In this document: positions 3 through 24,148 of the stretch, piece by piece
Position numbering within the stretch: the first letter of the stretch is position 1
Layout: each line of letters starts with the position of its first letter
Origin: Perkinsela sp. CCAP 1560/9
Lineage: Eukaryota > Protista > Euglenozoa: Kinetoplastea
Reading direction: 5' to 3'
DNA length: 24,148 nt
NCBI GenBank assembly: GCA_965644495.1
Contig: CBFFSA010000078.1
Span: 1 to 24,148, forward strand
Notes under the pieces: model-generated
What the model was told of the DNA's origin: nothing
Databases searched by the model: none
What the model saw: only the letters and a program-made list of their open reading frames with translations
Program-made: the position numbers and the translations under genes

Positions 3-1982
3 GTTCGAAGAGCTTTTGATATTGGGTCTGGTTCCATCAAGTGCCAGGTTGCTCGTGTCGATCTCGAACAAAATGTGATTGAAGAAAACCTCTTCTCCAA
101 ATCTTCACAAGTTCTCTTTCTTGAGAAAGTTTCTCAACAAAATAATTTCATTTCAAAAGAGAAACAAGAGGAGGGCCTTCGAAGTCTTCAAGATTTACTG
201 TCCTCCTGTCCTGGAGAGATTCATAACACAAGAGCGATTGCCACAGAAATCTTCCGTAAGTCTCAGAACGGCTCTGAAGTGATCGATTATTTCGAGAAGC
301 AAACTGGTCTTCAAATCTCCATCCTCCCTCCACACGAGGAAGCTTTACTCGGGTTTCGGAGTGCGAATGCTCTCACCACTCACCCAAAGAAGGGATTGAT
401 TTCATGGGACTGCGGAGCGGGATCCTTTCAATTTTCTTCTGATTCGGAAACCCATAGCGATTCTCTCGGTTCCGGAACTGCCTTAAAAGAGGCCCTTAGT
501 TTCTCAAAACAAGACAAGACTCCAAACCCATTCACACCAAATTCACTCCATCAACTCTTGAAGAGGTTATCGAACATCCTCAAACCTATCCCCGCATGGG
601 TGAACTCACCCACTTCGAATATTGTGGCGATTGGATCATCTCAATCCATTTTCAACCAACAGACCTTCTTAAGTGGACAAAACGTCATTACCATCCCAAA
701 GATCAAAGACATCCTCTCTCGATTGATGAACCTGACTGACAAAGAGATTTTTCTCCTTGAAAAAGAAATGTATGAACAACATTCCACATCTTCTTACATT
801 CTCAAAGAAGAAAATGCACCTTATGTCATCCCTAAACTTGCTCTCTTGCTGGCCGTGATGGAAAGCGCTTCCATTGAACAATTGGAGTTTTTTCTCACGA
901 ATGGGCACTGTGCTGCTATCCTTACGTCGCCTGACCTCTGGTCAGGTTCGTCTCCTTCTACAACAAACCCTTCCCCAACTAAAACAATTCGCACATCGTC
1001 ATCTAACCAGAGAAACGCCATCCCAGCAAATCAAAACAGATCATTCTCATCATCAGCAACCTCCACAATATCTTCTTGTGTTTCCCCAGACCAAACCCAG
1101 AAAAGACCTCTTTTTCAGCAAACAGAACAGCTCCCTACTCTTCTTACAGTGAACTGGCACGTCCAAAAAACTTGCAACTACAAATGCATCTTCTGCTATG
1201 CCCATTTTGAAGATTCCAAAGGGAATCTTCCCCCAAAGGATGGAATGGATATGTTGAATGCGCTCCGGCAAGTTGGTTTCTATAAAGTGAACTTTGCAGG
1301 AGGTGAGCCATTGATGAATAAACACCTCGGAGCGTACTTGCAATATGCGAAGAAAATTGGTCTTAAAACCTCGATCATCACCAATGCGAGTCTACTGACT
1401 GTCACCTGGCTTGAAACCTTCGGACCCTTTATTGACCAGATTGGAATTAGTTGCGATAGTCTGAACGATACTCTCAACAAGTCTCTTGGAAGAGGGTATG
1501 GCGCTCACGTAAAAATCACGCGCCGTGCACTCGAGAGGGTTCAACGGGTGAACGAGAAGTTTGACCTCAACATCAGGGTGAAGCTCAATACAGTTGTTAT
1601 GCGGCAGAATGCCAATGAAAATTTTACAAACTTTCTTTTGCAATCTGGGGTAGAGCGATGGAAAATCTTCAAAGTCTTGCCAATTGAGGGAGAGAATGAC
1701 CATGTTTACGATGAGATTTCAGTGTCAGAATCTGACTTCCAAAGCTTTGTGGATCGCCACCAGCACTTAAGTTCAACGGGGATTGCCATTGTACCTGAAA
1801 ATAATGAGGACATGACCGAGAGCTATCTGATGATCTCTCCTGATGGGAGGTTTTATCAGAATACCAATGGCGCCTATGAGTACTCTTCTTCTATTATTGA
1901 GAATGGGGTTGAAAAAGCTCTGAAAGAGATTGGGTTTCAGTACTCTAAATATTGTGTGAGAGGTGGCAACTATTCTTTGTGA
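3..1982 (+). CDS. RSAD2: Ppx/GppA-family phosphatase domain fused to a viperin (RSAD2-like radical SAM) domain; 5'-partial
   Basis: Frame 3 is open from nt 3 (VRRAFDIGSGSIKCQVARVD), so the true start lies upstream of the window. Ppx/GppA motifs: DIGSGS, AIATEIFRKSQNG, EEALLGF, WDCGAGSFQ. A Ser/Thr/Pro linker (~942-1148) follows. Viperin motifs: VNWH-x4-CNYKCIFCY (CxxxCxxC at 1173-1196), KVNFAGGEP, SIITNAS, GISCDS, KLNTVV, RWKIFKVLPIEGEN, ENNEDMTESYLMISPDGRF, C-terminal RGGNY. Confidence 0.92.
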   Translation, partial: VRRAFDIGSGSIKCQVARVDLEQNVIEENLFSKSSQVLFLEKVSQQNNFISKEKQEEGLRSLQDLLSSCPGEIHNTRAIATEIFRKSQNGSEVIDYFEKQTGLQISILPPHEEALLGFRSANALTTHPKKGLISWDCGAGSFQFSSDSETHSDSLGSGTALKEALSFSKQDKTPNPFTPNSLHQLLKRLSNILKPIPAWVNSPTSNIVAIGSSQSIFNQQTFLSGQNVITIPKIKDILSRLMNLTDKEIFLLEKEMYEQHSTSSYILKEENAPYVIPKLALLLAVMESASIEQLEFFLTNGHCAAILTSPDLWSGSSPSTTNPSPTKTIRTSSSNQRNAIPANQNRSFSSSATSTISSCVSPDQTQKRPLFQQTEQLPTLLTVNWHVQKTCNYKCIFCYAHFEDSKGNLPPKDGMDMLNALRQVGFYKVNFAGGEPLMNKHLGAYLQYAKKIGLKTSIITNASLLTVTWLETFGPFIDQIGISCDSLNDTLNKSLGRGYGAHVKITRRALERVQRVNEKFDLNIRVKLNTVVMRQNANENFTNFLLQSGVERWKIFKVLPIEGENDHVYDEISVSESDFQSFVDRHQHLSSTGIAIVPENNEDMTESYLMISPDGRFYQNTNGAYEYSSSIIENGVEKALKEIGFQYSKYCVRGGNYSL

Positions 1983-2325
1983 ACAAGAATCCTCTCTCAA
2001 ATCAGTCTTTCTCCGGCTCTTTCTCCAACATATTCCTGATGGATCCAATGATATTTTATTAATGATCAAAAATTCGAGAGTGTTTCTGCCCAGAAAGAGG
2101 GAGAGAATGACATCGAAAAAATGGGGATGAGATTCTTTTGGTTCGTCGAGTGGCTCGAGATCGATTCTGTGCAATAATTAAAACAAAGACCAGAAAAGAA
2201 AGAAATAAATAAACAGCAAAAAAAAAAATGAAATAATTTAAAGAATGCCCCTTCCAATAATAACCCAATAATAAAAAACAAAAAACAAATCAAAAAAATA
2301 ACAAAGTTCCAAACCACCTCCCAAT

Positions 2326-4452
2326 TTAGTTCCACAATTCAATGGATCTTTTCTCCCAATCCGAAACGAGAATTGAACCAGAAGGATCAACAACAACCCC
2401 ACGAGGTTTCCTCATGCGACCTTTACCAAATGAAAAAAGAAATGTTCCATCTTTCTCAAATACACTCACTCGTTCATTTCCCAATTCCGACACAACAATC
2501 CGACCTTCCCCATCCACATCAACACCTCTCGGATCCCCTAATTGAGATTCACCTGGACCTTCCGTCCCAAAACATCGAATAAAATTCCCTTCAATATCTA
2601 CCACTTTAATTCGATGATTCAAACCATCACAAATAACAATATTTCCCTCTCCATCAACCGTGACCCTGTAAGGTTTGTTCAACTGATCTTCCGAAGAACC
2701 AAACGAACCAAACGAACGAACAAAAGAGCCATCATTATCAAACACTTGAATTCGATGATTGTAAGTGTCACCAACGATAATGTTACCTTCTCTATCCACA
2801 TCGATTCCAAAAGGTTGGGCAAATTGACCAGGTTCAGAACCTCTTGAGCCAAATGATTTTATCAATTCTCCTTTTTTGTTTAATACGACAACTCGAAAAC
2901 GCTCTCGATACCAATCAAGAAGAACAATTTGATCATTTAATCCAATTGAAACATCAATAGGTTCCAAATGAAGTGATTCAATTGCTGTCTGAATTGGTTG
3001 AACGACATTTCCTTCTTTGTCTGTCACTCTCAACCCACCCTTCAATTCACTAATAAAAATATTCCCATCACTGTTCACACCCACTCCATAAGGTCCTTTT
3101 ATCGAAGAAACATAACGAAATCGATCACTCCCATCACAACAAATCGCTCCTTTCTTTGGTTTTGATAATAAGAGGGCTTCAACTTCCTCAGAAACAATAT
3201 CATTTGCAGTTTGAAGAAGAGTTGAAAAAAGTTGATCATCAAAAAGAGAAATATCAGTTGGCGTGTTGGATAATCGGATGATGGAATCTTGTCTGATTCT
3301 CAAATCTTCTTTCTCCAATTCGATTTCTTTCTTTTCAACTCTCTTCCTTTCTAACGTCTCTTCCAATTCTTTCATTTCTTCTTCAATTTTTTTTTTCTTC
3401 TTTTCAATAAAAATCAATCTTCTCTTGAATCTATCCCCAATCTTCACTACTTCATTCCTTTTCTTTAAAACACTTTCTTCAATCGATTTAACTTTCTCAT
3501 CGTGTATAGCATGCGTATCAAGAACACATCGAACACAAACAAAAAGAGAACATTCAAAACAATATCCACAAACCAACTCAGACGGGTGGTTTGAACATTC
3601 TTTCTTCTTCTTCTTCTTCTTCAATTTCCCATCATCACTCCCATCATCACTATCCCTCAAAACATTGGTGTTATTTCGTTGTTCACGTTTGTGATTTCGA
3701 GAGAAAAGAGTTGAAGTGTGAGATGGATCACAAGAATCACAAATGAACATTTGACAATTGGGACAGAACATTCTTGTTCGCTCTCCACACAATTCAAAAT
3801 TCGCACATTCCATTTCACCATCTATTTTTGGATGTTTTTCAAAAAAATAATTTCCAAACAAAACAAATTTGAGAAAAAAAAATTGAGAACAAAGAAAAAA
3901 GAGAAAAAGAAATCAAAATAAAGAAAAACCGGAGCAGTTGGAGAAAGAATGTGAAAAAGGATTTGATGAAGAAGAAAGAAGAATATCAATCGTTTCTGGG
4001 ATCAAATAATTCATTTCAAGGAGTTCAATTGTTTCGCATTCATTCACTTTTCTACACACTGGACATTTCACTCCTTTCTTTTCGGATAAAGAAGGTAAAG
4101 AAGAAGAAGAAGAAGAAGAAGTTGATGGATTTTGAAGGGAAGAGGGGGAAGAAGAAGGATTTTGAAGAAGAAAGAGTTTGTTGAGACAAGGGGAACAAAA
4201 AGAAAGACCACAGCAAGGTAACATCCTTGGTTCTTTCTCCCAATTCATCAACTCAAAACAAACCCCACATTCAAACCTCTTCTTCTTGTCTTCTTCTTTT
4301 TCGCTCTCGCTTCTGTTCACCACTTGTTCTTGTTCTTGTTCCTCTTCTTCTCTCTTTCCATCATCATCACAAACATCACGATAAACATCCAAATCTCTTT
4401 CCTCCTTCTTTCTTCCTCTTTCCTCCACTCCTCTCTTTCTCTTTCTATCCAT
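2326..4452 (-). CDS. TRIM-NHL protein (RING, B-box x2, coiled coil, NHL beta-propeller), ~672 aa; exons 4452-3930 and 3821-2326
   Basis: ORFs 3913-4452 and 2326-3861 join in frame through a 108-nt GT..AG intron (3929-3822, split codon G|AT = Asp). RING: CGVC..PCCGLSFCSPC..CPVC. B-boxes: CANFELC..FCPNC..ICDSC..H and CSNH..YCFEC..VCVRC..HAIH. An E/K-rich coiled coil follows, then NHL repeats such as FAQPFGIDVDREGNIIVGDTYNHRIQVF. Confidence 0.88.
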
Positions 4453-5226: not shown

Positions 5227-6501
5227 ATGGATCCTTCAACAGAACCAAATGAGATGTTATTACGCGCTCTCCAACACCATGGTTGCCCAGAAGCTTCTTT
5301 ATCTGAGTCTTCTCGTTGGATCGAAGTGCCAGGCCATCCCCCAGCGAATGCAGAAATTTTCTTTCGAAACACTGGAAGTGAAGATCACTTTCAACTTCAA
5401 TTAAATGCTCGGTTTGCTCTTGATGATGGGAGAGTGATCTGTGAGTCTGTGGTTGGACTGAGCGGCAGCAAAGAAGAAGCAATCTTGAAGGCTTTTCAAT
5501 CTTTTGGGATCAACTCTCTCCACACAATCCTTTGCGCGCTTTACGGTTACCCTTGTGATGACCAAGTTTCAATCGAGGTGATCGAATTTGAAGGCGAAAA
5601 CTGGGAAGTGATATTTGGTCCAATGGCAACCAACCGAGACCATAGTGTGATTCCAAAAGACTTTTCTGCCTTTGTAACTGATCAGATTTCCAAGAAGAAG
5701 AATGTTTCCCCCCACCATCTTCATTGGGCCAGGTTCTATTGGGGGCAACAAAATGGCGAATGTCTTGCTTCAGAAGCGTTATGGGATAATGAACCTTGGG
5801 AAGAAGCTCAAGAGGACATTAAAACTCTTGATTGGCCACAAGTGGATGGGTTCTATCAGGTTCGACAGTTTCTCATTCTTCGCAAACAAGGGGCTCCGGA
5901 ACAAGAAGGATCGTCCAATGCTCCAGTCATTGAGAAAGCCTTGAATACTCTTCTCTCTCTTATCGAAGAGAATCGGCAAATCAAAGATGAAGAAATTCGA
6001 GTCCGTCTTCGTCAAAGTGGGGTCTCTCCCTATTTGTCTTCCCAAATTGTTTTATTTGGACCAATGTGTGCTTCCTCTGTCCTTCTCCCTCGCTTAGGTT
6101 GCCCCTCCTATCCCACTCATTATCGTCTCCTGAAAGGCCCCTCTCCCCCCTCTGAAGAAGAATTCGAAAAAGAAGATAATCTTCTCTCTTTTAATGACAA
6201 TCCTGTGTTTTGTGTTGGGACACAATGGGCTTTTGGAGTGTCAGAAAAAGAATCTTTTTGGGATTTGGCTTCAAGATGTGCAATTTTTAGGGCTGTGAGT
6301 TCTCTTGTGTCGAAACAAACAGAGAAAGATTTATCATGTCTTGAATTTGGTATCCCAGTAGTTGTGGATGGTTCTTCTTCTCCTTCACAACAAGAAGAAA
6401 CCCAGGAGGTGGGAGACAGTGAGAATCCCGGCTCATCTTTTCTCTCTGTTACTAAAGACAAGGAGGTGGCAGACAAGGAGGACTCCTGCTCAATTCAGTA
6501 A
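5227..6501 (+). CDS. DUF6348-like protein with a C-terminal extension (424 aa, intronless)
   Basis: Clean ATG-to-stop ORF. The first ~220 aa resemble the bacterial DUF6348 family as recalled (DGRVICESVVG..AFQSF..SLHTIL..DQV..LHWARFY..EALWDNEPW..WP...GFYQVRQFLILR). Not searched. Confidence 0.65.
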   Translation: MDPSTEPNEMLLRALQHHGCPEASLSESSRWIEVPGHPPANAEIFFRNTGSEDHFQLQLNARFALDDGRVICESVVGLSGSKEEAILKAFQSFGINSLHTILCALYGYPCDDQVSIEVIEFEGENWEVIFGPMATNRDHSVIPKDFSAFVTDQISKKKNVSPHHLHWARFYWGQQNGECLASEALWDNEPWEEAQEDIKTLDWPQVDGFYQVRQFLILRKQGAPEQEGSSNAPVIEKALNTLLSLIEENRQIKDEEIRVRLRQSGVSPYLSSQIVLFGPMCASSVLLPRLGCPSYPTHYRLLKGPSPPSEEEFEKEDNLLSFNDNPVFCVGTQWAFGVSEKESFWDLASRCAIFRAVSSLVSKQTEKDLSCLEFGIPVVVDGSSSPSQQEETQEVGDSENPGSSFLSVTKDKEVADKEDSCSIQ

Positions 6502-6735: not shown

Positions 6736-9700
6736 TCACTTCACTTGTGAAGTTGTTAAAAATTCAAACAAAGCTTGGCCATGTCGCACTTCAAAAAGCT
6801 GAGCAGGAAAATTTTCATCAAACCAAACATAATCATCATCATCATCAATTTTCAACTCCAACATATCCTTCAAATCCAACCCAGGATCGATTTCATTTTC
6901 AACTCCCTTTCCTGAAAGTTGAGTCTGCAACAAATCTCGTAAAACTGGAAGGACAATCCGATGATATTTTCCCTTGTGGCCATCAAAATGTTTTTGAAGT
7001 TCTTCTTTGTGAGAAGGAAGGAGGTCTTCTGTGTAATTCGACAAAACATCATTCACCCCAATTTTCTCAACCAAATGTCGAAGATGGCAAAGTCGGATGT
7101 GTTCATTGACACTCGGAGGCGACACCTCATCCCAGTCACCCAGAGGGATCTCCAACACCTCAATAGCATAGTCTCTTAATAAAGCCTTCTCAAGTCCCAG
7201 TCTTTTGGCTGGAAATCCTCCAACAGTAAAAAAATCCGTGACAATCTTGATCTTCAACAGCAAAGCAACGATACGAGACTGGGTATTCACTTCAGCAAAA
7301 ATAAGATGCATGATGAAGTCGCTGACCGGAACTTGAGGAATTTGGGCACTAATATCAGTCACTCCCGCAACCTCACAAATGTCTCCTTTGTATTGATAGT
7401 ATTTGATGGATAATTCATTGCTCTGTTTGCCACCAAACACCCCAGAACGTAAAGAGTTTTCAATCGCCGAAAAATCATATTGAAAAGTGGAGTCCTTGCA
7501 AGAACTGAAAGCGGTGAGAAGAGGAATGAAGTCTTGTTGGCGGTTGTAAAAGATTAACTTTTGGCGAAGAGCGTGGGTTGGTGTTTCACATGAGATAATA
7601 GGTAAAATCGCGTTGTGGCCAGCAGCAGGAGGATCTCTCTGCTGTGGTTGTTCGTTTCTGTCGAGCCCAATCGCTCCCTCATGGATACGATGAAGATACA
7701 AAAGAAGTTGAACTGTACAATGGCCTTGGGCATCAATCTCTTTCCCTACTCTTGTGGCATTCGGAAGAGAAAAGAAGATGGGAGTGTCAGGGGTCATGGG
7801 ATTCGATTCCCCGGTCATTTTAAGATCCACCTGGCCATCTTCTGTTAAGAAGAAATTCTTGTTGCACTCGAATATGAGATCAACAATTGGGAAAGACTGA
7901 TTAAAGGCATCGCAGAAGCTACGGAGTACCCTTTGTCCTCTCTCTCGTTCATCCTGTGTAGGCAACGCCGAGAGAATATCAGCATTGGTAATTTTTTGGG
8001 CTTGAGCACGAGTGAGCTGATTGTCTTGGAAAACAGAGAAAAGAAGGTTGTGCCATTCTAAAATTGGTACAATACATCGAACCAACTCTAATCGATTTTC
8101 ATTTTCCAAGAACCCGTTGATCAACGGGTACTTCTCCTCAAAGGAGGGAACTGCGGTGGTTAACATGGTAAAGTGTTCCAGACTGACTGACGGGGAGAAC
8201 CTCCACATTTGGGATGGGGGCAAGAATGATTCCAAAAGTCCATCCCACATTTGTTGGCCCAAACATCGCTGCAAGATCAATTCGCGCTGGGACGTTTGCC
8301 AAGAAGAATCCACTCGATGCTTGATGGTGTTCTGGATATCATTCATTACAGAACGAACCGATGTATTTGCTGTAGTTTCGAGTTCTTGAATTGGTTGTTT
8401 GGAACTCAAAGTACTTCCATGAATCCAGAAAGGGTCTTTGTCAATCAACAAACAGAGAGAAGCATTCAACAAAACACCGTTGAGTAAGCTATCCAACCGA
8501 TTCCGATGAATAAGGTCATCAAAATCACGACCAACAAGAAACATAATTTCGTCTCGCAATTTTTCATCGTTAGGATAACGAACAAGTTTTGAAACACCAT
8601 CTGGGGAACCATTCGGGATCGTAAGAGATGTAAATAGACAAGTGTTCACAAGTAAGCGAATAAAATTGGTGGTATAGTGCTCTATGCGTCTGATGTTTTC
8701 TCCGTGAACATATTGATAGCCTAGATGTGATGAGAGTTCCATCAATGGGTTGACTTTGGCCTCTTTGACTCCAGCAACGCTTCGATGATTTTGACCTCCA
8801 ATATCCGCACCACAAGTAGGACACTTTCCCCTTTGCATTGGCATACCACACTCTCCAACACAGTAAGGATGACCATTTGGACACTCAAACCTAAAAGATA
8901 TTTGTTAGAAGAGATAAAGAAACAAACAAAAACAAAAAAAACAAACCATCGGAGACCGACAAGAATAGGATCGAATTTTGATGCTGGCAAGTAACGATCT
9001 GTAAATTTGCTAGGCTCAACTAAAAGACAAGCTAACCAAGAAGAAGGATTCGCAGATGCTCCAATGAGAATGCGAAGTTGGACCTGCAAGAGAATCTTCG
9101 CCTTATTTCCAAGAGGTTGTCCCTCCTCTGTAGTTGCTGCAACGATATTTCGTGGGAGGGAGGGAGAATCAAGCTCTGGGAAACTTGAGAGAAGAATAAT
9201 GTTGATTGCAAAAGGGAGAATTGCAGACAAGAATTGGAAGGATGGCTTTACCCTCAATCCTTCTGACAAACTCTTGCCAAGAGCATTCGCTCGTTTCAAA
9301 ATTCGTTCCTTATTTTTCCTCTCAACCGAAGCCAGATTCTTGATTTGGTAATGCAAAGCAGGGATCAACAACTTCTCGGGGTGTTTCACATCAAGGATCA
9401 TCAAAACTTTTTTCTCATTTAGAATATCATCTTGAAGGCACTCTTTAATTAGGGTTTCTAATTCTTGGAGTTCAGAACCACGATTAGACTTCGCAACAAG
9501 AGGACCAAATGGGCAATCTTCGACAACAATCTGTAAAGCACTTTGATCATAGCGAACCCAATCACACATTTTATCCTCCTGCATAAACAAAAAGCAGAGA
9601 ATACAATCAAGACCCGCCATATCTTTCATTGCCTTGAACACAAACACACGAAAGTTCTCTGCTTGATCAGGAGAAAGAAGCTTGTTGAAGTACGCCGAAA

Positions 9701-11594
9701 ATCTTTTAAAAACGGGGTGTGCCAAAAGGGATTCTGATGGAAAATTCTCAGAACCAATGAACCGACCATACCGACGAAGGATGACCTGAAGACGTGCCAA
9801 GGAATCCAATCTTGCCCTTTTCGTTGGTTCGTCCTGAACATCAAAATCTTCATCCAATTTCTCCCAATTAACTCCAATATCGAGATCTTCAGGACGTGCA
9901 TAATTAATGAGCTTCTCCAAGGAAGCTGGATCCTCGTTGAGAATTCCCAATGTTTCTTCAAATTCATTCAATTTAATTGCAAGATAGAGGCGCTTTCCAA
10001 GAGAACTCGTAATTCGATAAAAGACTTCATCTTTCCCGATGGGGTTTTGCTCTTGTGACCTTTCACTCCTCAGGAGCACATTCAGTAAAGCAACCCGTGT
10101 TGATGGTTTTGGGTCAAAGAATAGAAGGATCTCTTGATCTTCAGTCTGTGGTTTATCAGTAATTGGAAGACGGAACGATTCTGAGTTTGTAATCTCCGAG
10201 AGATGAAACACCAACAAACGATCGACTTGTTGAAAATCTTTTGAAGTGAGACCAATTGGGAAAAGGATTTCCTCCAGGTAACGAACTAATAAGTTCTCAA
10301 TCAAACGCCTGGATCCAAACTTAGTTCTCTGAAATTTCCACTTGTCGGGAACAGACCCCTCATTCTCCCACGAAAAGAGAGAAAGATGATCTTTTTTTCC
10401 ACCAAAAACATTCCCCTCTTCTTGTTCTTCTTCCCCAGCACGAAAAGATGCTGAGTTTACTTTGGGTTTTGATTTCTCTCCAAAATTGCGTTTCGAGGGA
10501 GGAGCCAAAAAATCATTCCAAAACTCCTGTGGTAACGCCAACTTTTCTGAAGAATTCGAATCTTTAACAACCACTTTCAGAGATTGACAAGAAGTACAAA
10601 GAGATCTAATCTTTCGATGTTGATCCTTGAAGTGGCCAATGATCATTCCACAATCAAGACAACAAGAGAATTGGGAGTAAAAATCACCGACAGCCAGACA
10701 AAATTGGTCATAAAAGCTTGCAGAATAAACATCAGAAGATTTTAACAATTGTAAGATACTCCTGCCAGATTCTCCAACACCCCAATCACATCCATCACCT
10801 TGTAAAAGAGCCTCAAAGAAAATCTTCAAGAGTACAACAGAACTCCATTGAGTCTTCAAAGAGGGCAGTCCTCCACGTTCGCGTTTTGGACTTTGATTCC
10901 AATCGTTTATAAGATCAGCAATCTCTGAATTGAGAGACGAAATGAGAGAGAGAAAAGACGATAAGTGTTCTGTGGTAGGGGGTGGAACATTTTCTCCTGC
11001 AGACATCTTGATAAAAGGGAGATTCTCTGCTTTGCTCCAAATAAAAGAAAGTATTCCATCAAATACAGCCTCGAAGAGATGCGACATACGCAGGGCAGTC
11101 TCAGAACCGTTCATCGCCTTGTACATCGAAACCAGTGTGTCATTTCGAGCGGAAGAAGAGGAAGGAAGGGTAGATAAAATACGTTGGATCATTTGGAGGC
11201 GGATTTCGTTTTGAGAGAAAGAGACATGAATCGATGCGGGCGACTGGAGAGAATCAGGGTGAAAAGAGAGGAGAACAGTTTTGTGAATGAATAAAATCTC
11301 TTCAAAAACAAGGCCTTTGAAAGAGGAAGCGTTGGTAGAGAGAAAATCATGAAGAAAACCGAATTTTTTTTGGCCATTTCGATTCCCCACCTTGACAAGA
11401 TCAGAACCCCTCTGGCCCAACGAACTCAAAAAGAGTTTCTTCTTTTTTTCAACATCAAGTTCAAACTGTTTGGCTCCAATCTTTCTTGCAGGTGGCGCGC
11501 TCTCATTTGTTTCTTCTTCTCGGGAATTCTCTCTTCCAATCCATTCCACTTTTCTTCTTTTTTTTGTGGGAGACAGATGCTGATGGGTTGTCAT
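6736..11594 (-). CDS. RNF213-like protein (E3 module, RZ zinc finger, C-terminal domain), ~1600 aa; exons 11594-8947 and 8890-6736
   Basis: A 56-nt intron (8946-8891, GTTTGT..TTTTAG, split codon TG|G) joins the two long ORFs and rebuilds WFECPNGHPYCVGECGMPMQRGKCPTCGADIGGQNH, the RNF213/ZNFX1 RZ finger. Downstream segments (IVPILEWHNLL, GHCTVQLLLYLHRIH, YDFSAIENSL, IPQVP) resemble the RNF213 C-terminal domain. First ATG is at 11594. Confidence 0.82.
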
Positions 11595-11879
11595 AAACAA
11601 ACAAAATCGTGCAAACAAGAAAACAAAAAATCAGCATGGGATCTTCCTGCTGATTCACCGAAGTTCATTGTTCTTCTGAACATCACCGAAAAAAATCAAA
11701 ATTGGCAATTTTAGTGACGTGTTATTTTTTAAAAAGTTATCGTTTTTCCTCCAAATCAAAAAATGCTTCCAAAGAATTGGGGTCAAACGACGTCAAGTCC
11801 CATTTGAAAAATCTTCGAATTTTCTTCGGGAGAAAAAAAAATGGAAAGACAAAAAGAGAGAGTATTTTTATGAGTTTCC

Positions 11880-12587
11880 TCAAAATGGGGAGTCAGATTG
11901 TGGTAACTGCCAAATCTGATGATTCAAACCAAACCGTTCAAAGATCTCTTTTGCCTCTTTGTTTGTCCATTTCTTCCATTCGGGGTTGAGATGAGAGCCA
12001 TACCAAACTTTCGCGAAATCCCAAATACTTTGGATTGGTCGAACATCTCCTTTCTCCACCCGGTGTTGTTCGCACCAACGATCAACATCTTCTTCATCTT
12101 TAAACAAAAGCATCACACCACAAGTGTAGATCACATTGTCCCATGCATTTGTCATTGGGACTGGAAAATGAACGACATAATCTTTTTCGAGAAGTTGACC
12201 ATCTTTGATGTGGAGTTCAACTTGTTGCCGATCTGCGCCGAGAGATGCCACAATGGTCACATCCTGTTTCAGCAAATTCGCAAGCCCCAACGAACACCAA
12301 GCACAAGTGCCCCACCATTCTCTTGTCCGTTTCGTTCCCTCTTCTGGATCGAGACGAACAACAAAGTTGGTGGGCGCAAGAGAAATAGGGTGGATAACCC
12401 AGATCTCATCACTGTTGGGATGCAAGACAACACCATGGTCATCTTGCAAAGATTTTAATCCAATCGACAACTCTTCTTGAGAAACGGTCAGAATCGAGGC
12501 GAGTTGGTCTGGTTTTGGCGCATATCCATGATCGATGATGTATTTCAGAATGGTATAGTGTAACTTCGCATGCGTTAAAGTTGCCAT
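11880..12587 (-). CDS. merB: Alkylmercury lyase (MerB)-family protein, 235 aa, intronless
   Basis: N-terminal winged-helix-like segment, HPISLAPTNFVV, WWGTCAWCSLG and VVHFPVPMTNAWDNVIYTCGVMLLF..VDRWC match MerB-family motifs. Confidence 0.75.
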   Translation of the reverse strand: MATLTHAKLHYTILKYIIDHGYAPKPDQLASILTVSQEELSIGLKSLQDDHGVVLHPNSDEIWVIHPISLAPTNFVVRLDPEEGTKRTREWWGTCAWCSLGLANLLKQDVTIVASLGADRQQVELHIKDGQLLEKDYVVHFPVPMTNAWDNVIYTCGVMLLFKDEEDVDRWCEQHRVEKGDVRPIQSIWDFAKVWYGSHLNPEWKKWTNKEAKEIFERFGLNHQIWQLPQSDSPF

Positions 12588-16791: not shown

Positions 16792-17230
16792 TTAGAGGAC
16801 ACCCAGACTCTCGACTAGTTCTCCGAATTTGGGATTTGCAAGTGCTTTAGTGAAGATGTCCGCAAGTTGTTGTGTTGAGGAGACTCTCTTGATCCGCAAT
16901 AACTCTTTCCGAACCATCTCTCGAACATAGTAATATTTGGGTCGGATATGTTGATTCCGATCAGTAACTTGAGTTCCTTCAGCCATTCCTCTTGCAGGAT
17001 CATTGTCACAGTATAATTCAATGATTGGCATCCCCTTTTTGTCGAAAGTGAATTCCAACACATCACGCATCCAAATCGCACAGCAGGCCAGCTTGTTGAG
17101 CGCAATGAACTCTGCTTCCATAATGGATTGAGCCACAGTAGATGGGAGTTTTGATTTCCAGCTGATGAGGTACTTTTCTAAGAAGAGTCCAAATCCAATT
17201 GTAGATCTTCCTTCATTTACATCATCATTG
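16792..17230 (-). pseudogene. Copia pol C-terminal fragment (RNase H)
   Basis: NDDVNEGRSTIG..ISWKSK..TVAQSIMEAEFIAL..LYCDN..HIRPKYYYVRE..QLADIFTKAL. Confidence 0.92.
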
Positions 17231-17235
17231 TAACT

Positions 17236-17542
17236 AGTTGAGTCCTCTACGGAATAGTATGGAGATAGAGACAAGAACAGAGAACAAGAACAAAGAACAA
17301 AGAAAGAACAAGCTTGGTTCAATGTCTTTTATCAAATGCGTTCCAAAAGCCAAAAAGAACAAAAGAAAGTTTACGCTCTTTCGCCCACAAATGGGTCCAA
17401 AGAACAAAACCTCTTTTGTACAAAAAAGGGCAACAAATAATTTACAATTATTCACAATCGGAAAACACACACAAAACAGTTCAGTGTTTCCGCTCACCAA
17501 CAAAACGACAAAGTCAACAAAACCAACTATGACAACCCAACA
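17236..17542 (-). repeat. Gypsy 3' LTR
   Basis: Direct repeat of 22496-22802; no mismatch seen on reading. Confidence 0.95.
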
Positions 17543-17649
17543 CCCCCCGCAAGTGCACTTGCTCGCAATTCACGACACACAATAAAAACAAAACAAAACA
17601 AAAAGAACAAAACAACCAACACAACAAGCATCACAACAGAAATAGTTCC

Positions 17650-20600
17650 TCATTTCTTCTTTACACGCCGTGTCGATTTTCTCCGCTTTGCGTTGTATTC
17701 TCGAATCGCATCATCTGCCAAAAAATCACTCGCAGGTTGCCAAGATGTCTCATCATAATATTTCCATTTGACAAGGTACTCCTTCTCGCCATCTTTGCCC
17801 CGATCATCCAAAATTTTCTCAAATTCATAGATATCAGATAAATTCGTTTCTCCTGGAATCACTTTCAATCGTGCAATAGGAACTTCTGCTTCAAGAACTT
17901 TCCCATCAATACATTCCAGCGAATAACCTTTCGTCTCATTGTTATATTTAGCAATACGAAAAGGGCCTTCCCAGCGTTGCTGCCATTTTGTAGTTCTTTT
18001 ATCCACTTCTTTCATAACTGAAGTGCCAATCGCCAGAGGTTTAGGTCGCAAAGATCTTTTTTTCCGTCTCATTTCATTCGCATCATCACAGCCTTTCTTA
18101 CCCGCTTCTTTGGATAATTTTGCAAGTGCTGGATAAACCGAATAGACCATTTTCCGATTTCTCTCTAACAATTTTTCAGGAGTTGCAACTTCCAATTCCA
18201 ACCCCTCATAATTTGCTGCTTGGTTCCTCTCTCTCGCGAACATCACCGCAAAGGGAGTAGACTTATGTCTCGAGATATAGCGATCATTCAATGACATTTG
18301 AACAACTGGCAAAAATTTCACCCAATTTGTCATATCTCCTTCCAGCAATTTTACAACCAAACCCGAAACTTCTCTCACGTATCTCTCAACTGCACCATTT
18401 TGAGCAGGGTAATATCTCATCACCTTTCTCGATTTTGCAGTCGAAGCATTACGAAAAGCCTCCATAACTTTGTTGAAAAACGATGGGTCTTGATCACTTT
18501 GAATCTCCTTCGGGACACCAAAATTCGCAAAAACAGATAGCAAAGCTTCCGCAACTGACTCCGCTTCCTTGGAGATTAATTTACACAGTATCACGAAACG
18601 ACTTGCAATATCTATTACAATAAGGACAATTGTATAGCCCTCATTTGACTCAGGCAACCCACAAATAAAATCCATACCAATTATATCCATAGGCAGCGCT
18701 GAAGTAACTGGGGTAATCGGATGAAATCCAATTCTCCCATGATTGTATTTCAGACACACCACACAACCTCGACAGACCGTAATTACCATCCTTCTCATTG
18801 ATGGCCAGTAGTAGCCTGCACGAAATAGTTTCCGAACTGTTCCTGAAACACCAGCATGACTTTCCTCATGCTTTTCTTTCACCAAAGGCAGTTTCTCTTC
18901 TTCCTCTGGTTCTTTCTTACCAAGTACATTCCCAATAAACTCTTCGAGATATCTCTTAGTTCCTTCAACAGGCTCATCCTCACACTCAAGCACAGCAACA
19001 TCGCAAGTATTAATTGCTGGTTCAGTAGAATCGTCTGTAACTGGGTATTTTTCTTGATACAATCGAGAGAGATAGTCTGGTAAAACATTATGGATCCCTT
19101 TTTGGTAAACAATGTAGAAGTTGTAATCCAATAGAAAATCCAACCAGTCCAAAATCATAAACTTTGTACTTGAATTCAAATACACAAGCGCCTTATGATC
19201 CGTCTCCACTCTAAACTTCCGCCCAAAAACATATGAACGGAACTTCCTAATCGCAAAAATAATTGCCAAAAGTTCCCTCTTCGGTGCAGGATAATTTCGT
19301 TGCCCCGCTTGAAGAGTTTTCGATGCAAATACAATATAACGTTTCTTGTCATTTGCATCAACTTGGTACAATACCGCACCAACTGCATATTGTGAAGCAT
19401 CAGTTGCAATACGAAATTCTCGATCCCAATCTGGCTGAGACAACACCGGAGCATTCGAGATAACCTCTTTGAAAAAATCAAAAGACTTGTCTTGCTCCTC
19501 GCCCCACGCCTTACCAAGACGCCTCATCTTTCGCAACTTGTCCAACGGAGCCGCAATAGTCGCATAATTTGGGACAAAATCCCTCAAAAAATTCAGAAAA
19601 CCAAGAAGACTTTCAACTTGCTTTCCAGTCTGAGGTTTCACCATCTTCTGAGCCATTTCTTTCTTGAATGAATCGATCTCTCGAGTAAAACCATCAATCA
19701 AATGACCCATGAATTGAATCCTCTTCATGCAGAATTTTGATTTCTTCATCTTAATCCGAAATCCTGCTCTCGTCAACTTTCGGATGACTCTGTGAGCTTC
19801 ATTAGAATGATTTTCCAGCTCTTTAGAAAAAACTAGAAAATTATCCAAATAACTTGCAGCTTCATCTGAAACACCGATAACTCGTTCTCCTTGGACTTGA
19901 AAATGCGTAACCGCACCTTTCGGCCCAAATGACATCCTCACATACACATACTGACTCTTATCAGGTGCCAGAAAACCCAACAATGGCTGACTCTTTTCTG
20001 ACACCACAATATGATGATAAGCCTCCGTGAGATCGATTTCGGTAAAATATTTCGCACCCCGAACACGTTCAAACAATTCCGCAGGAGATGGCAAAATATT
20101 ACTTGGATCCTTTGTTAAAGCATTTACCGCTCTCAAATCCAAACAAACTCTGATATCATCAGGATCCACCCGACCACCAGACTTCTTAGGGACCGCTAAA
20201 AGAGGGGAATTCCACAAGTTCTTCTCGTCCTTGTCCCACTTCTTAACAAATCCTTTTTTCACCCACTCGTTCACTCGCTCCATAACCTTTCCTTTCAATT
20301 TCTCAGGGATTGGATACTGTGGCACAAACTTCGGAGTGTCTTCTTTCAAAGAAATTTTAAACTCAGAACCTGGGAGCACACAATGAGAATTTTCCTGCAG
20401 TCTCTGGTTTTCCTTCAAAGCATCATCAATACTCTGAATAAACAACTTGACTGACTCATCATCCCATTGCTCCTCTTGACTCTGATCCTCATTATCATCC
20501 AACCACTGCCGATCATCGACTTGGACTTGACGAGCAATACTTGGGAAGACCGCTTCGATTCCTTGAACAGTCACCCCCAACCGCTTTGCATCTTCATGAT

Positions 20601-22419
20601 GAATCAACAAATGATTACCAGTCAAGGCTGGATTTCTCCAAACCTTAACTACAGTTGCATAAAACAAAGTATACGCAGCAACCATCTTAAAACGAGTAAG
20701 TGTCTGTACTGCAGCACCAATGCCACCAGACCGATGCTTCCCTTGACCTTCTTCACCTTCCAACTGATCCCATAATCTTGAATCAGCCATCGTCACCGTA
20801 ACTGCTGAATCATGGATAGTCCAAATATTCAGCGATTTCGAATCACCCCACGTAATCGGAACATACAATTTCGTCGAATCTGGAGGTGGTGAAATTGGGC
20901 CAAGAGCATTCTCCTCACTCACACTGAGAGGTGAATTAACATCTCTCAAAAATTGTTTATACATCTTGTCTTCTTCCATTAAAGATGAAGCACTGGCATC
21001 AGCACTGGCTCCTTCCTCCGGTAGCAGAAAACAACCATCTTTGGGAGTCGAGCGTTCAGGACAGTCTTTCTTCTTGTGACCAGGTTGCAAACATTTGATA
21101 CACAAATTTTTTCCTTTGATCTCTTTCCAAGAAATTTTTTTCTCCTTCGCACTCTCGTTCCCATTCTCGTTCGAAGACGTCGATGAAGGCGGTGGTTTCT
21201 TCTTGTAACACTGACTTTCCGAATGGCCAGTTTTCTTACAAAATGCACAAGTTGCCTTTTTCTTTAGCACCTTTGCATCCTCCTTCAACAAAACAAACTG
21301 GTCTGTGTCTTCGACCTCAAAGGCATGGTCCACTAAAACTCTCCAATGAACCTCCTGGTCACGCTCAAACGCTTGACCAAAATTCCTCGCCCAAAGTAAT
21401 TCATATTCTGTGCGAGAATTCTCTCGGAGCTTTAATTTTGCTTCTTTCGAATTCAAATCCAACCGAAGCTCCAACAGAAACCAAGAGAGTCGCTCTGCAA
21501 ATTTCTTTATACATTCTGACTCCTCCTGAACCACCAAACCCAAGAGTCCCTCCACCTTCTGACTGAAGTTGGCTCCCAAATTCGATTTTTTTAAAAACTT
21601 AAACATCTGGTTCACCGTCCAATCCGAGGTATCTGACTGTACAAAATCAGACTTCGTTGTTCCAGATACTGCCCGCAAGAGATACTTCTTCTGCACCCCC
21701 TCTTGCAAACCTTCAGCCTTCATCAAAATCTTAAACGAAAACTGAAACTCAAGGACTTTCGCAACGTCCTTCGTTAGGGTTTTTAATTTTGGTAGATTGT
21801 CAAGTTTCTTTAACCAATCTCCCGAGCCCGTGGATGATTCAAACAAACCAACTGAAGGATTAGCTACTCCCCTTGGTATTCTGGCTCGCCTCCTTGAATC
21901 ACTCCCACTCGAGGAAGAACAATCTGACACAGACTGCTCCCTCTTCATCACGTGATAATTTGATTCCGACTCAGTTGAAGAAGTGGCTTCCTTCTCTTCC
22001 AACTTTGTCATTCTTCTTCCAGGAATTCTCAAATTCCCTGGAACACCTGAAGGTCCTACTCGACTTCTTATGTCTGAGTACTCAGGTTCCGATGTCTCGA
22101 ATTTTGTCTCACGAGCCAATGTTTGTTTCAAGAGCTTCAACGTAACTTGGATCGTAGAAATTCGCTTCTGCAAACTCGCAATGGCCTCTTCATGAAACTC
22201 ACCCTCATCTAGATTGAGATTAATCACCTGATCCATTAATGTGAGTTCAAGTTTCCTCAGTTTGTCATAACGCTGGACAACTTCAGACTCCAGTGACCCT
22301 GACAAGACTGATAATGACAACTCAGACGACGACATCCGTTCAATTTCACTTTCTGCATCTTGATCCTCTTGTTCCAAACTAAGGGGCGTCTCATGGGCCT
22401 CCTCCTTTGCTGACTCCAT
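17650..22419 (-). CDS. Gag-Pol polyprotein (2 CCHC knuckles, protease, RT, RNase H, integrase, chromodomain)
   Basis: CAFCKKTGHSESQC and CIKCLQPGHKKKDC; protease-like HDSA; RT with IDLTEAYHHI, MSFG and YLDN; RNase H TDASQYAVGAVL; integrase HHCC plus D-D-E (MDF, SDQD, AVER); GPF motif; chromodomain YEFEKILD..EYLVKWKYYDETSWQP. First ATG is at 22419; the track start at 22437 is TTG. Confidence 0.95.
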   Translation of the reverse strand: MESAKEEAHETPLSLEQEDQDAESEIERMSSSELSLSVLSGSLESEVVQRYDKLRKLELTLMDQVINLNLDEGEFHEEAIASLQKRISTIQVTLKLLKQTLARETKFETSEPEYSDIRSRVGPSGVPGNLRIPGRRMTKLEEKEATSSTESESNYHVMKREQSVSDCSSSSGSDSRRRARIPRGVANPSVGLFESSTGSGDWLKKLDNLPKLKTLTKDVAKVLEFQFSFKILMKAEGLQEGVQKKYLLRAVSGTTKSDFVQSDTSDWTVNQMFKFLKKSNLGANFSQKVEGLLGLVVQEESECIKKFAERLSWFLLELRLDLNSKEAKLKLRENSRTEYELLWARNFGQAFERDQEVHWRVLVDHAFEVEDTDQFVLLKEDAKVLKKKATCAFCKKTGHSESQCYKKKPPPSSTSSNENGNESAKEKKISWKEIKGKNLCIKCLQPGHKKKDCPERSTPKDGCFLLPEEGASADASASSLMEEDKMYKQFLRDVNSPLSVSEENALGPISPPPDSTKLYVPITWGDSKSLNIWTIHDSAVTVTMADSRLWDQLEGEEGQGKHRSGGIGAAVQTLTRFKMVAAYTLFYATVVKVWRNPALTGNHLLIHHEDAKRLGVTVQGIEAVFPSIARQVQVDDRQWLDDNEDQSQEEQWDDESVKLFIQSIDDALKENQRLQENSHCVLPGSEFKISLKEDTPKFVPQYPIPEKLKGKVMERVNEWVKKGFVKKWDKDEKNLWNSPLLAVPKKSGGRVDPDDIRVCLDLRAVNALTKDPSNILPSPAELFERVRGAKYFTEIDLTEAYHHIVVSEKSQPLLGFLAPDKSQYVYVRMSFGPKGAVTHFQVQGERVIGVSDEAASYLDNFLVFSKELENHSNEAHRVIRKLTRAGFRIKMKKSKFCMKRIQFMGHLIDGFTREIDSFKKEMAQKMVKPQTGKQVESLLGFLNFLRDFVPNYATIAAPLDKLRKMRRLGKAWGEEQDKSFDFFKEVISNAPVLSQPDWDREFRIATDASQYAVGAVLYQVDANDKKRYIVFASKTLQAGQRNYPAPKRELLAIIFAIRKFRSYVFGRKFRVETDHKALVYLNSSTKFMILDWLDFLLDYNFYIVYQKGIHNVLPDYLSRLYQEKYPVTDDSTEPAINTCDVAVLECEDEPVEGTKRYLEEFIGNVLGKKEPEEEEKLPLVKEKHEESHAGVSGTVRKLFRAGYYWPSMRRMVITVCRGCVVCLKYNHGRIGFHPITPVTSALPMDIIGMDFICGLPESNEGYTIVLIVIDIASRFVILCKLISKEAESVAEALLSVFANFGVPKEIQSDQDPSFFNKVMEAFRNASTAKSRKVMRYYPAQNGAVERYVREVSGLVVKLLEGDMTNWVKFLPVVQMSLNDRYISRHKSTPFAVMFARERNQAANYEGLELEVATPEKLLERNRKMVYSVYPALAKLSKEAGKKGCDDANEMRRKKRSLRPKPLAIGTSVMKEVDKRTTKWQQRWEGPFRIAKYNNETKGYSLECIDGKVLEAEVPIARLKVIPGETNLSDIYEFEKILDDRGKDGEKEYLVKWKYYDETSWQPASDFLADDAIREYNAKRRKSTRRVKKK

Positions 22420-22495
22420 GGAGAAAAAGTTTTCCAAAAAAAAATGGATTTACAACCGATTAAACTCGACGCACACGAGGAAAAGACCAAAAAAA

Positions 22496-22802
22496 AGTTG
22501 AGTCCTCTACGGAATAGTATGGAGATAGAGACAAGAACAGAGAACAAGAACAAAGAACAAAGAAAGAACAAGCTTGGTTCAATGTCTTTTATCAAATGCG
22601 TTCCAAAAGCCAAAAAGAACAAAAGAAAGTTTACGCTCTTTCGCCCACAAATGGGTCCAAAGAACAAAACCTCTTTTGTACAAAAAAGGGCAACAAATAA
22701 TTTACAATTATTCACAATCGGAAAACACACACAAAACAGTTCAGTGTTTCCGCTCACCAACAAAACGACAAAGTCAACAAAACCAACTATGACAACCCAA
22801 CA
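22496..22802 (-). repeat. Gypsy 5' LTR
   Basis: Direct repeat of 17236-17542. Minus-strand termini are TGTTG...CAACT. Confidence 0.95.
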
Positions 22803-23497
22803 TAACTCGCATCGGAGTAACCTCTCGGGATAGGAATCAAAACTTGGTCTTGAGAAGCTCCAGAGTTCCACCAGTAGTGTAAACCTTTCTCCTTGGTTCC
22901 CTTGAGATACTCAATAACTTGCACAATAGCCTTCCAATGTTCTGGTCCAGGGTTGGATACAAAGCGTGCGAGAGAACAGACAGCATACATAACGTCAGGA
23001 CGGGTACAGGCAGCAACATAAAGCAATGAACCAATGGCTTCACGGTAAGGAAATTTTTCATTTCTATCCTTCCCCTCCAGTGAATTTGCGGCGAGATGTG
23101 TACCTTTCTGCATTGGTATGCGACGTATTCTCTTTCCTTCTGCGTCATACTTCTTTGCAATCTTCTCAATATAATTTGTTTGGGTCATGTGACAGCCATG
23201 CTCATCCCATCTGAATCGAATTCCAAGAGCATAATCCAAAACTCCAAGCAATTTTGTTTGGAACGACTTTGTAAGTTCACCCTCTATTCTTACCCTCTCA
23301 CTCTCAGAATTCCCAGTGTAGAATAGATCATCCACGTAGATGGCAAAGATGGTAATGAACCGTCCTTCGATTTTTCGGTATACACACGGTTCTTTCTCAC
23401 AATTTTGGTAGCCTTGCTTGATGAAGAAAATATGTAGAACCACGTTCCAGTTTTTTCCAGCATCAGGCGCACCATACAAGGATTTTTCAAGGATTGC
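22803..23497 (-). pseudogene. Copia pol fragment (C-terminal part of RT up to the start of RNase H)
   Basis: AILEKSLYGAPDAGKNW..EPCVY..AIYVDDLFYTG..GYSDASY. It has no start codon and is cut by telomere repeats. Confidence 0.92.
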
Positions 23498-24142
23498 AGG
23501 GTTTAGGGTTTAGGGTTTAGGGTTTAGGGTTTAGGGTTTAGGGTTTAGGGTTTAGGGTTTAGGGTTTAGGGTTTAGGGTTTAGGGTTTAGGGTTTAGGGT
23601 TTAGGGTTTAGGGTTTAGGGTTTAGGGTTTAGGGTTTAGGGTTTAGGGTTTAGGGTTTAGGGTTTAGGGTTTAGGGTTTAGGGTTTAGGGTTTAGGGTTT
23701 AGGGTTTAGGGTTTAGGGTTTAGGGTTTAGGGTTTAGGGTTTAGGGTTTAGGGTTTAGGGTTTAGGGTTTAGGGTTTAGGGTTTAGGGTTTAGGGTTTAG
23801 GGTTTAGGGTTTAGGGTTTAGGGTTTAGGGTTTAGGGTTTAGGGTTTAGGGTTTAGGGTTTAGGGTTTAGGGTTTAGGGTTTAGGGTTTAGGGTTTAGGG
23901 TTTAGGGTTTAGGGTTTAGGGTTTAGGGTTTAGGGTTTAGGGTTTAGGGTTTAGGGTTTAGGGTTTAGGGTTTAGGGTTTAGGGTTTAGGGTTTAGGGTT
24001 TAGGGTTTAGGGTTTAGGGTTTAGGGTTTAGGGTTTAGGGTTTAGGGTTTAGGGTTAGGGTTTAGGGTTTAGGGTTTAGGTTTAGGGTTTAGGGTTAGGG
24101 GTTTAGGGGTTAGGGTTTAGGTTTAGGGTTTAGGGTTTAGGG
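23498..24142 (+). repeat. Telomeric array (TTTAGGG)n, about 92 units
   Basis: The G-rich strand runs 5'->3' toward the window end. There are occasional TTTAGGGG units and, distally, TTAGGG and TTTAGG variants. Confidence 0.98.
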
Positions 24143-24148
24143 TTATTT

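Follow-up and report, generated by a model that had tools for sequence, protein, structure and literature searches.

Viperin (RSAD2) and its prokaryotic counterparts (pVips) are radical S-adenosylmethionine (SAM) enzymes whose antiviral products are 3′-deoxy-3′,4′-didehydro-nucleoside triphosphates (ddhNTPs). Shomar et al. reported fusions of viperin to a CYTH (triphosphatase/cyclase) domain (10.1101/2023.09.13.557418). Among other pairings, viperins are accompanied by nucleotide kinases, as in the pVip-kinase fusions and in the pairs with VakA or CMPK2. CMPK2 is mitochondrial, as the family described below appears to be. Can viperin also be paired with a hydrolase of a different fold? Here we analyze an open reading frame (ORF) on contig CBFFSA010000078.1 (assembly GCA_965644495.1, Perkinsela sp. 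CCAP 1560/9) in which a Ppx/GppA-like domain precedes viperin. The window, that is, the whole stretch of DNA analyzed, is 24,148 nucleotides long and is the entire contig. Judged by comparative sequence analysis, the N-terminal domain is very probably a functional partner of viperin.

The arrangement resembles the viperin-kinase pairs in that a nucleotide-metabolizing partner is held to viperin by fusion or by head-to-head or tail-to-tail linkage. The partner is a predicted ASKHA-fold phosphohydrolase and not a P-loop kinase, and its predicted direction is therefore opposite to that of the viperin kinases. The viperin-CYTH fusions likewise join viperin to a predicted phosphate-removing domain, although the two folds are unrelated (CYTH tunnel versus ASKHA). 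Unlike in viperin/RSAD2 and pVips, a 314-residue ASKHA domain comes ahead of viperin, and the closest stand-alone kin of the viperin half include viperins on contigs of nucleocytoplasmic large DNA viruses (NCLDVs). The family also differs from RSAD2 in having an apparent mitochondrial-type presequence rather than an endoplasmic reticulum/lipid-droplet helix. The ORF is laid out as follows.

Positions 3 to 1982, plus strand: Ppx/GppA-like plus viperin fusion ORF, single copy, 5′-truncated at the contig edge.
Positions 3 to 944, plus strand: ASKHA-fold Ppx/GppA-like phosphohydrolase domain (residues 1 to 314) belonging to the WDCGAGSFQ-motif clade of viperin partners, identified by Pfam PF02541, an AlphaFold2 (AF2) model, fold matching, and clade support of 100/100.
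Positions 948 to 1136, plus strand: disordered Ser/Thr/Pro-rich linker (residues 316 to 378), highly variable in length across homologs.
Positions 1137 to 1982, plus strand: viperin radical SAM domain (NCBIfam NF038283; mouse viperin, E = 5e-48).

The preliminary description had read this stretch as a Ppx/GppA domain, a Met-less linker, and an intact viperin in one frame, and profile searches bear that reading out. The single frame runs for 659 codons with neither stop codons nor introns. Pfam Ppx-GppA (PF02541) matched residues 30 to 257 at 52.6 to 55.2 bits (cutoff, 27), Pfam Radical_SAM matched residues 387 to 536, and the NF038283 viperin model matched residues 381 to 654 at 285 to 288.7 bits (cutoff, 180); the PADLOC pVip profile also matched (E = 1e-83). 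The linker contains no Met and falls below a predicted local distance difference test score (pLDDT) of 50 in the AF2 model of the whole ORF, which comprises two separately folded domains with no fixed interface between them (predicted template modeling score [pTM], 0.51). The frame continues past the 5′ end of the contig, so the true start and ∼12 to 45 N-terminal codons are absent from the assembly (21 Mb, 110 contigs), in which no other contig was found to overlap the missing end. No second viperin was found in the assembly, and Pfam and PADLOC revealed no nucleotide kinase domain in the ORF or adjoining it within the window.

A full-length search returned ∼34 full-length homologs of 593 to 753 residues (42 to 47% identity), nearly all covering the whole query and nearly all carrying both Pfam domains in one frame. 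Many are near-copies of a gene from a single organism, in which repeats have expanded the linker; merging these leaves ∼14 distinct lineages. In those near-copies (P0005 to P0025, e.g., L005:7439-9484), the linker is a 9-residue repeat whose number varies from 1 to ∼13 between assemblies. The contigs carrying homologs are eukaryotic (GC content, 22 to 64%), with neighbors such as a TOR-like kinase, an FG-nucleoporin, and Rrp15. Some AT-rich copies are split in pieces as if by introns. L058 and L069 are intron-bearing genomic copies, and other homologs are derived from transcriptomes. Named members come from an Aulacoseira (diatom) culture transcriptome, where the sequence may be a contaminant, and from Picozoa COSAG02; the supplements of Shomar et al. 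add Pseudopedinella and partial transcripts from centrohelids and from Scyphosphaera (10.1101/2023.09.13.557418). Because ∼34 full-length homologs hold both domains in one frame, an assembly artifact or a pair of separate genes is excluded. We also considered a bacterial origin of the fusion. The long Ppx-like matches (P0164, P0165, P0200, P0231, and P0303) proved to be tandem Ppx or other fusions, and no bacterial viperin fusion was seen. Searches of IMG/VR and of phages gave distant radical SAM genes only, and the ESM Atlas held no cluster for the fusion.

Has this fusion been described before? The preliminary description knew of none. The preprint text of Shomar et al. names only kinase, E3, CYTH-type, and reverse transcriptase fusions and does not mention Ppx/GppA; members are nevertheless present in its dataset, and the raw HHpred table (Supplementary Table 6) lists a COG0248 GppA match for EP00590_11675 (10.1101/2023.09.13.557418). 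Our literature search turned up no relevant paper linking viperin to Ppx or exopolyphosphatase. The sequence is thus in a published dataset, yet the viperin-Ppx/GppA fusion appears to be undescribed.

We then asked what the N-terminal domain resembles. Its AF2 model (pLDDT, 91) best matches the short Ppx/GppA phosphatase of Aquifex (1T6C/2J4R; Z = 26.5), followed by E. coli GppA (25.8, matched through its N-domain) and, at a lower score, Legionella NTPDase1 (Z = 20.0). Aligned to DrPPX, for which mutagenesis has mapped the roles of the residues (PMC11234463), the active site reads as follows.

Positions 18 to 35, plus strand: first phosphate loop, DIGSGS, with D6 equivalent to DrPPX D7 and the polyphosphate (polyP)-contacting Asn replaced by Gly.
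Positions 240 to 257, plus strand: ATExFR motif, with invariant R85 equivalent to DrPPX R86.
Positions 339 to 341, plus strand: invariant E113, the general-base Glu, equivalent to DrPPX E114.
Positions 408 to 431, plus strand: second phosphate loop, DCGAGSFQ, with D136 and S141 kept and Q143 in place of DrPPX E143.

D6, R85, E113, D136, and S141 are invariant in the family, and 17 of 17 members examined match PF02541. Unlike the short Ppx/GppA enzymes, the domain has a Gln as its second Glu, shares only ∼18% structural identity with them, and lacks C-terminal HD-like domains. With positions matched by motif, the polyP contacts of DrPPX are apparently gone: Asn11 has become G10, the basic K35/R37 region is missing, and the REG Arg is replaced by TNGH or TNGN. 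Models of exopolyphosphatases proper failed (TIGR03706, 67 versus 307 bits; PRK10854, 20 versus 864 bits). NTPDases/apyrases have the same fold (Z = 18 to 20) and the DxG...DxG pair, but their structural score is below that of Ppx and Pfam GDA1_CD39 (PF01150) had no match at E ≤ 1 in 17 members; only weak profile matches, over the Q143 stretch, link the subfamily to NTPDases (E = 0.07 to 2.3). No NTPDase of the assembly's own emerged from a search with little power to detect one, and searches of the PDB with fragments displayed no alignments to NTPDases. Loss of the Glu at E143 cuts DrPPX activity ∼25-fold (PMC11234463). The Gln at this position is a subfamily trait (190 of 193 motifs) and occurs in stand-alone proteins of protists and bacteria, which number in the hundreds and often have hydrophobic signal-peptide-like leaders. 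The Gln-type subfamily also includes tandem duplicates and fusions with a domain of the histidine-phosphatase or aldose-epimerase kind (P0164, P0165, P0200, and P0231). Another contig of the same assembly (L027:1327-2634) encodes a degenerate member with a presequence-like N terminus, eroded catalytic motifs, and no viperin nearby. Ppx-family proteins can be ATPases or GTPases with no activity on polyP or pppGpp (PMC3411833). With the catalytic Asp/Arg/Glu/Asp set kept, Gln standing in for the second Glu, and the residues that bind polyP apparently lost, our alignments suggest a nucleotide phosphohydrolase rather than a polyP hydrolase; polyP or pppGpp is a doubtful substrate.

The viperin half retains the features of viperin/RSAD2 and pVips, including CxxxCxxC, GGE, and the barrel residues.

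Positions 1173 to 1196, plus strand: CxxxCxxC [4Fe-4S] motif (C391, C395, and C398), by alignment.
Positions 1299 to 1307, plus strand: GGE SAM-binding motif, by alignment.
Positions 1860 to 1877, plus strand: beta-8 loop pocket, in which N620 and Y625 take the places of mouse C314 and K319, respectively, by alignment to 6Q2P.

The three cysteines, GGE, the barrel residues, and the N620/Y625 pocket do not vary across the family, and the residues of the triphosphate and nucleobase pockets are present. Asn at the mouse C314 position marks the promiscuous pocket type (10.1101/2023.09.13.557418), so the alignment identifies the query viperin as intact and of the Asn/promiscuous type. The animal-type, CTP-selective model TIGR04278 failed (178 bits; cutoff, 450), with Asn/Tyr replacing Cys314/Lys319. 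The domain groups with bacterial-type viperins, Leptospira-like ones being closest. The closest stand-alone viperins are 52 to 54% identical, and some of them are encoded on AT-rich contigs close to major capsid genes of NCLDVs. In all, ∼25 stand-alone viperins (L011:8001-8855, L016:10001-10858, and P0073 to P0099) form the closest kin clade of the fused viperin, with at least two lineages in that viral setting; no description of giant-virus viperins was found in the literature searched. Fused and NCLDV-type viperins cluster together (Shimodaira-Hasegawa-like approximate likelihood ratio support of 99, with a few unassigned rows; 81/98 in a more careful tree), and nesting of the NCLDV viperins within the fused ones is borderline (approximately unbiased [AU] test, P = 0.047). 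The NCLDV-type proteins have neither the Ppx-like domain nor an N-terminal leader.

Does the hydrolase keep company with viperin when the two are not fused? Within the Gln-type subfamily, the clade of N-terminal domains with the WDCGAGSFQ motif stands on a long stem (100/100) and holds all fused copies, together with stand-alone hydrolases. Of six stand-alone members whose flanks could be used, five adjoin a viperin gene, at the following loci.

L068, L070/L071, L077, and L078: stand-alone hydrolase and viperin, tail-to-tail.
L076: stand-alone hydrolase and viperin, head-to-head.

L078 lies on a 1.7-Mb contig of Incisomonas marina. The linked hydrolases are 36 to 58% identical to each other, their flanking genes differ, and the pairs occur in two orientations; adjacency has therefore outlasted deep divergence and an inversion. 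As the five loci belong to one clade, we take them to reflect a single event, long retained, instead of five. The linked viperin genes are spliced, and their exons were analyzed separately. Their products look animal-like: the first exon alone scores 295 to 317 bits with TIGR04278, the proteins have N-terminal tails, and the second exon encodes an Asn/Lys pocket. They are 30 to 35% identical to the query viperin and cluster with a main-clade viperin, on a very long branch; a single clade of fused and linked viperins was not rejected (AU test, P = 0.12). The tree does not place this long branch firmly, and their probable separate origin is read from the similarity to animal-type viperins. The stand-alone hydrolases nest among the fused copies (97/88), and monophyly of the fused copies was rejected (AU test, P = 0.009). 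The simplest history would be that fusion came first, followed by fission and re-pairing with another type of viperin. At a further locus (L079, positions 905 to 3628), a VakA-like thymidylate kinase + DUF3293 gene (PADLOC VakA, E = 1e-18) lies head-to-head with a hydrolase frame that enters the start of viperin and breaks just past the first viperin Cys. This is probably a fusion locus and appears to carry both kinds of partner, hydrolase and kinase; it may be a three-enzyme viperin locus.

Complete homologs carry N-terminal extensions of 11 to 47 residues that are rich in Arg, Ser, and Thr and nearly free of acidic residues. By a compositional rule of our own, rather than TargetP or MitoFates, 9 of 14 were presequence-like versus 3 of 86 outgroup proteins (Fisher P = 2e-7, a value that overstates the case because the sequences are related). 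A cleavage-type motif, R-x-[FYLW]-[SA]-[STA], lies just ahead of the domain in 8 of the 14. The linked stand-alone hydrolases mostly retain such leaders, and their partner viperins have a hydrophobic N-tail. From these compositions, the family appears to be addressed to mitochondria.

These observations can be joined in a mechanism. A cleavable presequence would import the fused protein, or only the hydrolase in the split form, into the mitochondrial matrix. There, the ASKHA domain would act as a Mg-dependent nucleoside tri/diphosphate phosphohydrolase, with an NTPDase-like active site and no polyP exopolyphosphatase activity, and would strip terminal phosphates from ddhNTPs. Matrix ddhNTP would be capped and the mitochondrial RNA polymerase spared chain termination, making the hydrolase an off switch or antidote and the counterpart, in reverse, of the CMPK2/Vak kinases; where the two domains are fused, ddhNTP made in the matrix would be cut back to lower phosphates or limited to a short pulse. 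ddhCTP terminates transcription by POLRMT, the RNA polymerase of mitochondria (PMC11982959), and viperin is induced in protists during giant-virus infection (10.64898/2026.10.11.758280). We consider an off switch the simplest account because the predicted matrix hydrolase is almost always paired with viperin, by fusion or adjacency, and would remain in mitochondria where the partner viperin has a membrane tail. Of the three roles offered in the preliminary description, the best fit is to trim or detoxify the product; generating the substrate and sensing, both taken up below, fit less well. Our tentative preference, at somewhat under an even chance, is for a domain that takes phosphates off ddhNTPs in mitochondria, thereby protecting the T7-like RNA polymerase there. 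Several points weigh against it. A fused hydrolase would adjoin its own source of ddhNTP and could destroy the NTP substrate, which fits an antidote poorly. The leader of the query copy lies beyond the contig edge, and the presequence calls depend on the rule given above. No viperin lies near the stand-alone hydrolase L067 on its 4.2-kb contig. The only neighborhood controls for the outgroup subfamily were three bacterial loci, where no viperin was found. The Gln in NTPDase ACR4 is only a putative equivalent of Q143. Finally, when a family member's viperin half (EukVip35) was expressed alone in E. coli, it scored negative against T7 (10.1101/2023.09.13.557418).

That last result would be expected if the domain fed viperin by trimming a hyperphosphorylated nucleotide or converting NTP to NDP, or if ddhNDP or ddhNMP were the effector or an exported form re-phosphorylated by a kinase. 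The kinase adjoining at L079 and the ancestral covalent fusion point the same way. However, 14 of 25 eukaryotic viperins were likewise negative in that assay (10.1101/2023.09.13.557418), the model has no fixed interdomain interface (pTM, 0.51), and a pyrimidine-type Asn/Lys viperin, seemingly in another compartment, is a further partner of the hydrolase; we hold a role in substrate supply or product alteration to be unlikely. Only a little less unlikely is a second antiviral arm, in which the domain hydrolyzes natural NTPs (compare SAMHD1 and the dGTPase defenses), starving viral polymerases and raising the ddhNTP:NTP ratio so that chain termination becomes more efficient. The NTPDase-like fold with its intact catalytic core, the strict linkage to viperins, and the absence of the domain from giant-virus viperins of the same clade agree with such depletion, but viperin's own substrate would be consumed, and a mitochondrial location suits cytosolic or viral-factory pools poorly.

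The Glu-to-Gln change, at a site whose loss lowers DrPPX activity ∼25-fold (PMC11234463), could instead mark a catalytically weak sensor or regulator that switches viperin on as mitochondrial nucleotide status changes, much as Rtg2 is a regulatory ASKHA protein. Yet the remaining catalytic residues are all invariant, hundreds of relatives that stand alone have the same Gln, often behind signal-peptide-like N termini, and a split form is incapable of regulation in cis, leaving a sensor with quite a low probability. We give slightly less credence again to a true mitochondrial exopolyphosphatase, acting on polyP or pppGpp and coregulated with viperin in infection: short Ppx/GppA enzymes are the best sequence and structure matches, against which stand the failed TIGR03706 score and the apparent loss of the DrPPX polyP contacts. 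The ORF does reach the contig edge, as a chance fusion or assembly artifact with no functional link might, but the full-length homologs, the transcriptome copies, the intron-bearing L058 and L069, and the adjacency kept after fission make this barely credible.

The surroundings of the fusion gene are those of a chromosome end, which lies ∼21.5 kb away. Other features of the window are as follows.

Positions 2326 to 4452, minus strand: TRIM-like gene with RING, B-box, coiled-coil, and NHL regions, tail-to-tail with the viperin fusion (Pfam).
Positions 5227 to 6501, plus strand: intronless bacterial-type DUF6348 gene, single copy in the assembly.
Positions 6736 to 11618, minus strand: large gene that spans two frames and encodes an RZ-type zinc finger (RNF213-like E3 region); PADLOC gave no match.
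Positions 11880 to 12587, minus strand: intronless bacterial-type MerB-like alkylmercury lyase gene.
Positions 16792 to 23479, minus strand: Ty3/gypsy-like polyprotein ORF of 1,595 residues between two copia-like reverse transcriptase/RNase H fragments, just inside the telomere (from translations only).
Positions 23498 to 24144, no strand assigned: telomeric array of 93 copies of a 7-mer at the contig terminus.

The assembly contains two distinct eukaryotic 18S genes (L024 and L025). Judged by eye on the sequence, they are an amoebozoan and a kinetoplastid-like gene, a pairing that fits a coassembly of a Paramoeba-type amoeba host and its Perkinsela-like symbiont; we assign the fusion gene to the amoeba.

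What our comparisons would add is a Ppx/GppA-like clade as a dedicated partner of viperin, with mitochondrial-type leaders and with adjacency kept after fission. It is possible, although we regard it as doubtful in its entirety, that protists widely share a mitochondrial module in which a promiscuous viperin in the matrix works with a dedicated ddhNTP phosphatase, that this module was later split and re-paired with animal-like viperins, and that giant viruses took the viperin half alone. For protist immunity, the family represents a third class of viperin partner, after the kinases and the CYTH or E3 fusions, and giant viruses carry viperins of the fused-viperin lineage. It also provides a biochemical handle on the large Gln-type Ppx-like subfamily. 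The family offers a concrete candidate enzyme for two questions: how a cell that makes ddhNTPs keeps from poisoning the T7-like RNA polymerase of its mitochondria, and by what route ddhNTPs turn over. If the mitochondrial antidote module is real, the hydrolase would be the first enzyme known to have evolved for clearing the antiviral nucleotides made by viperin.
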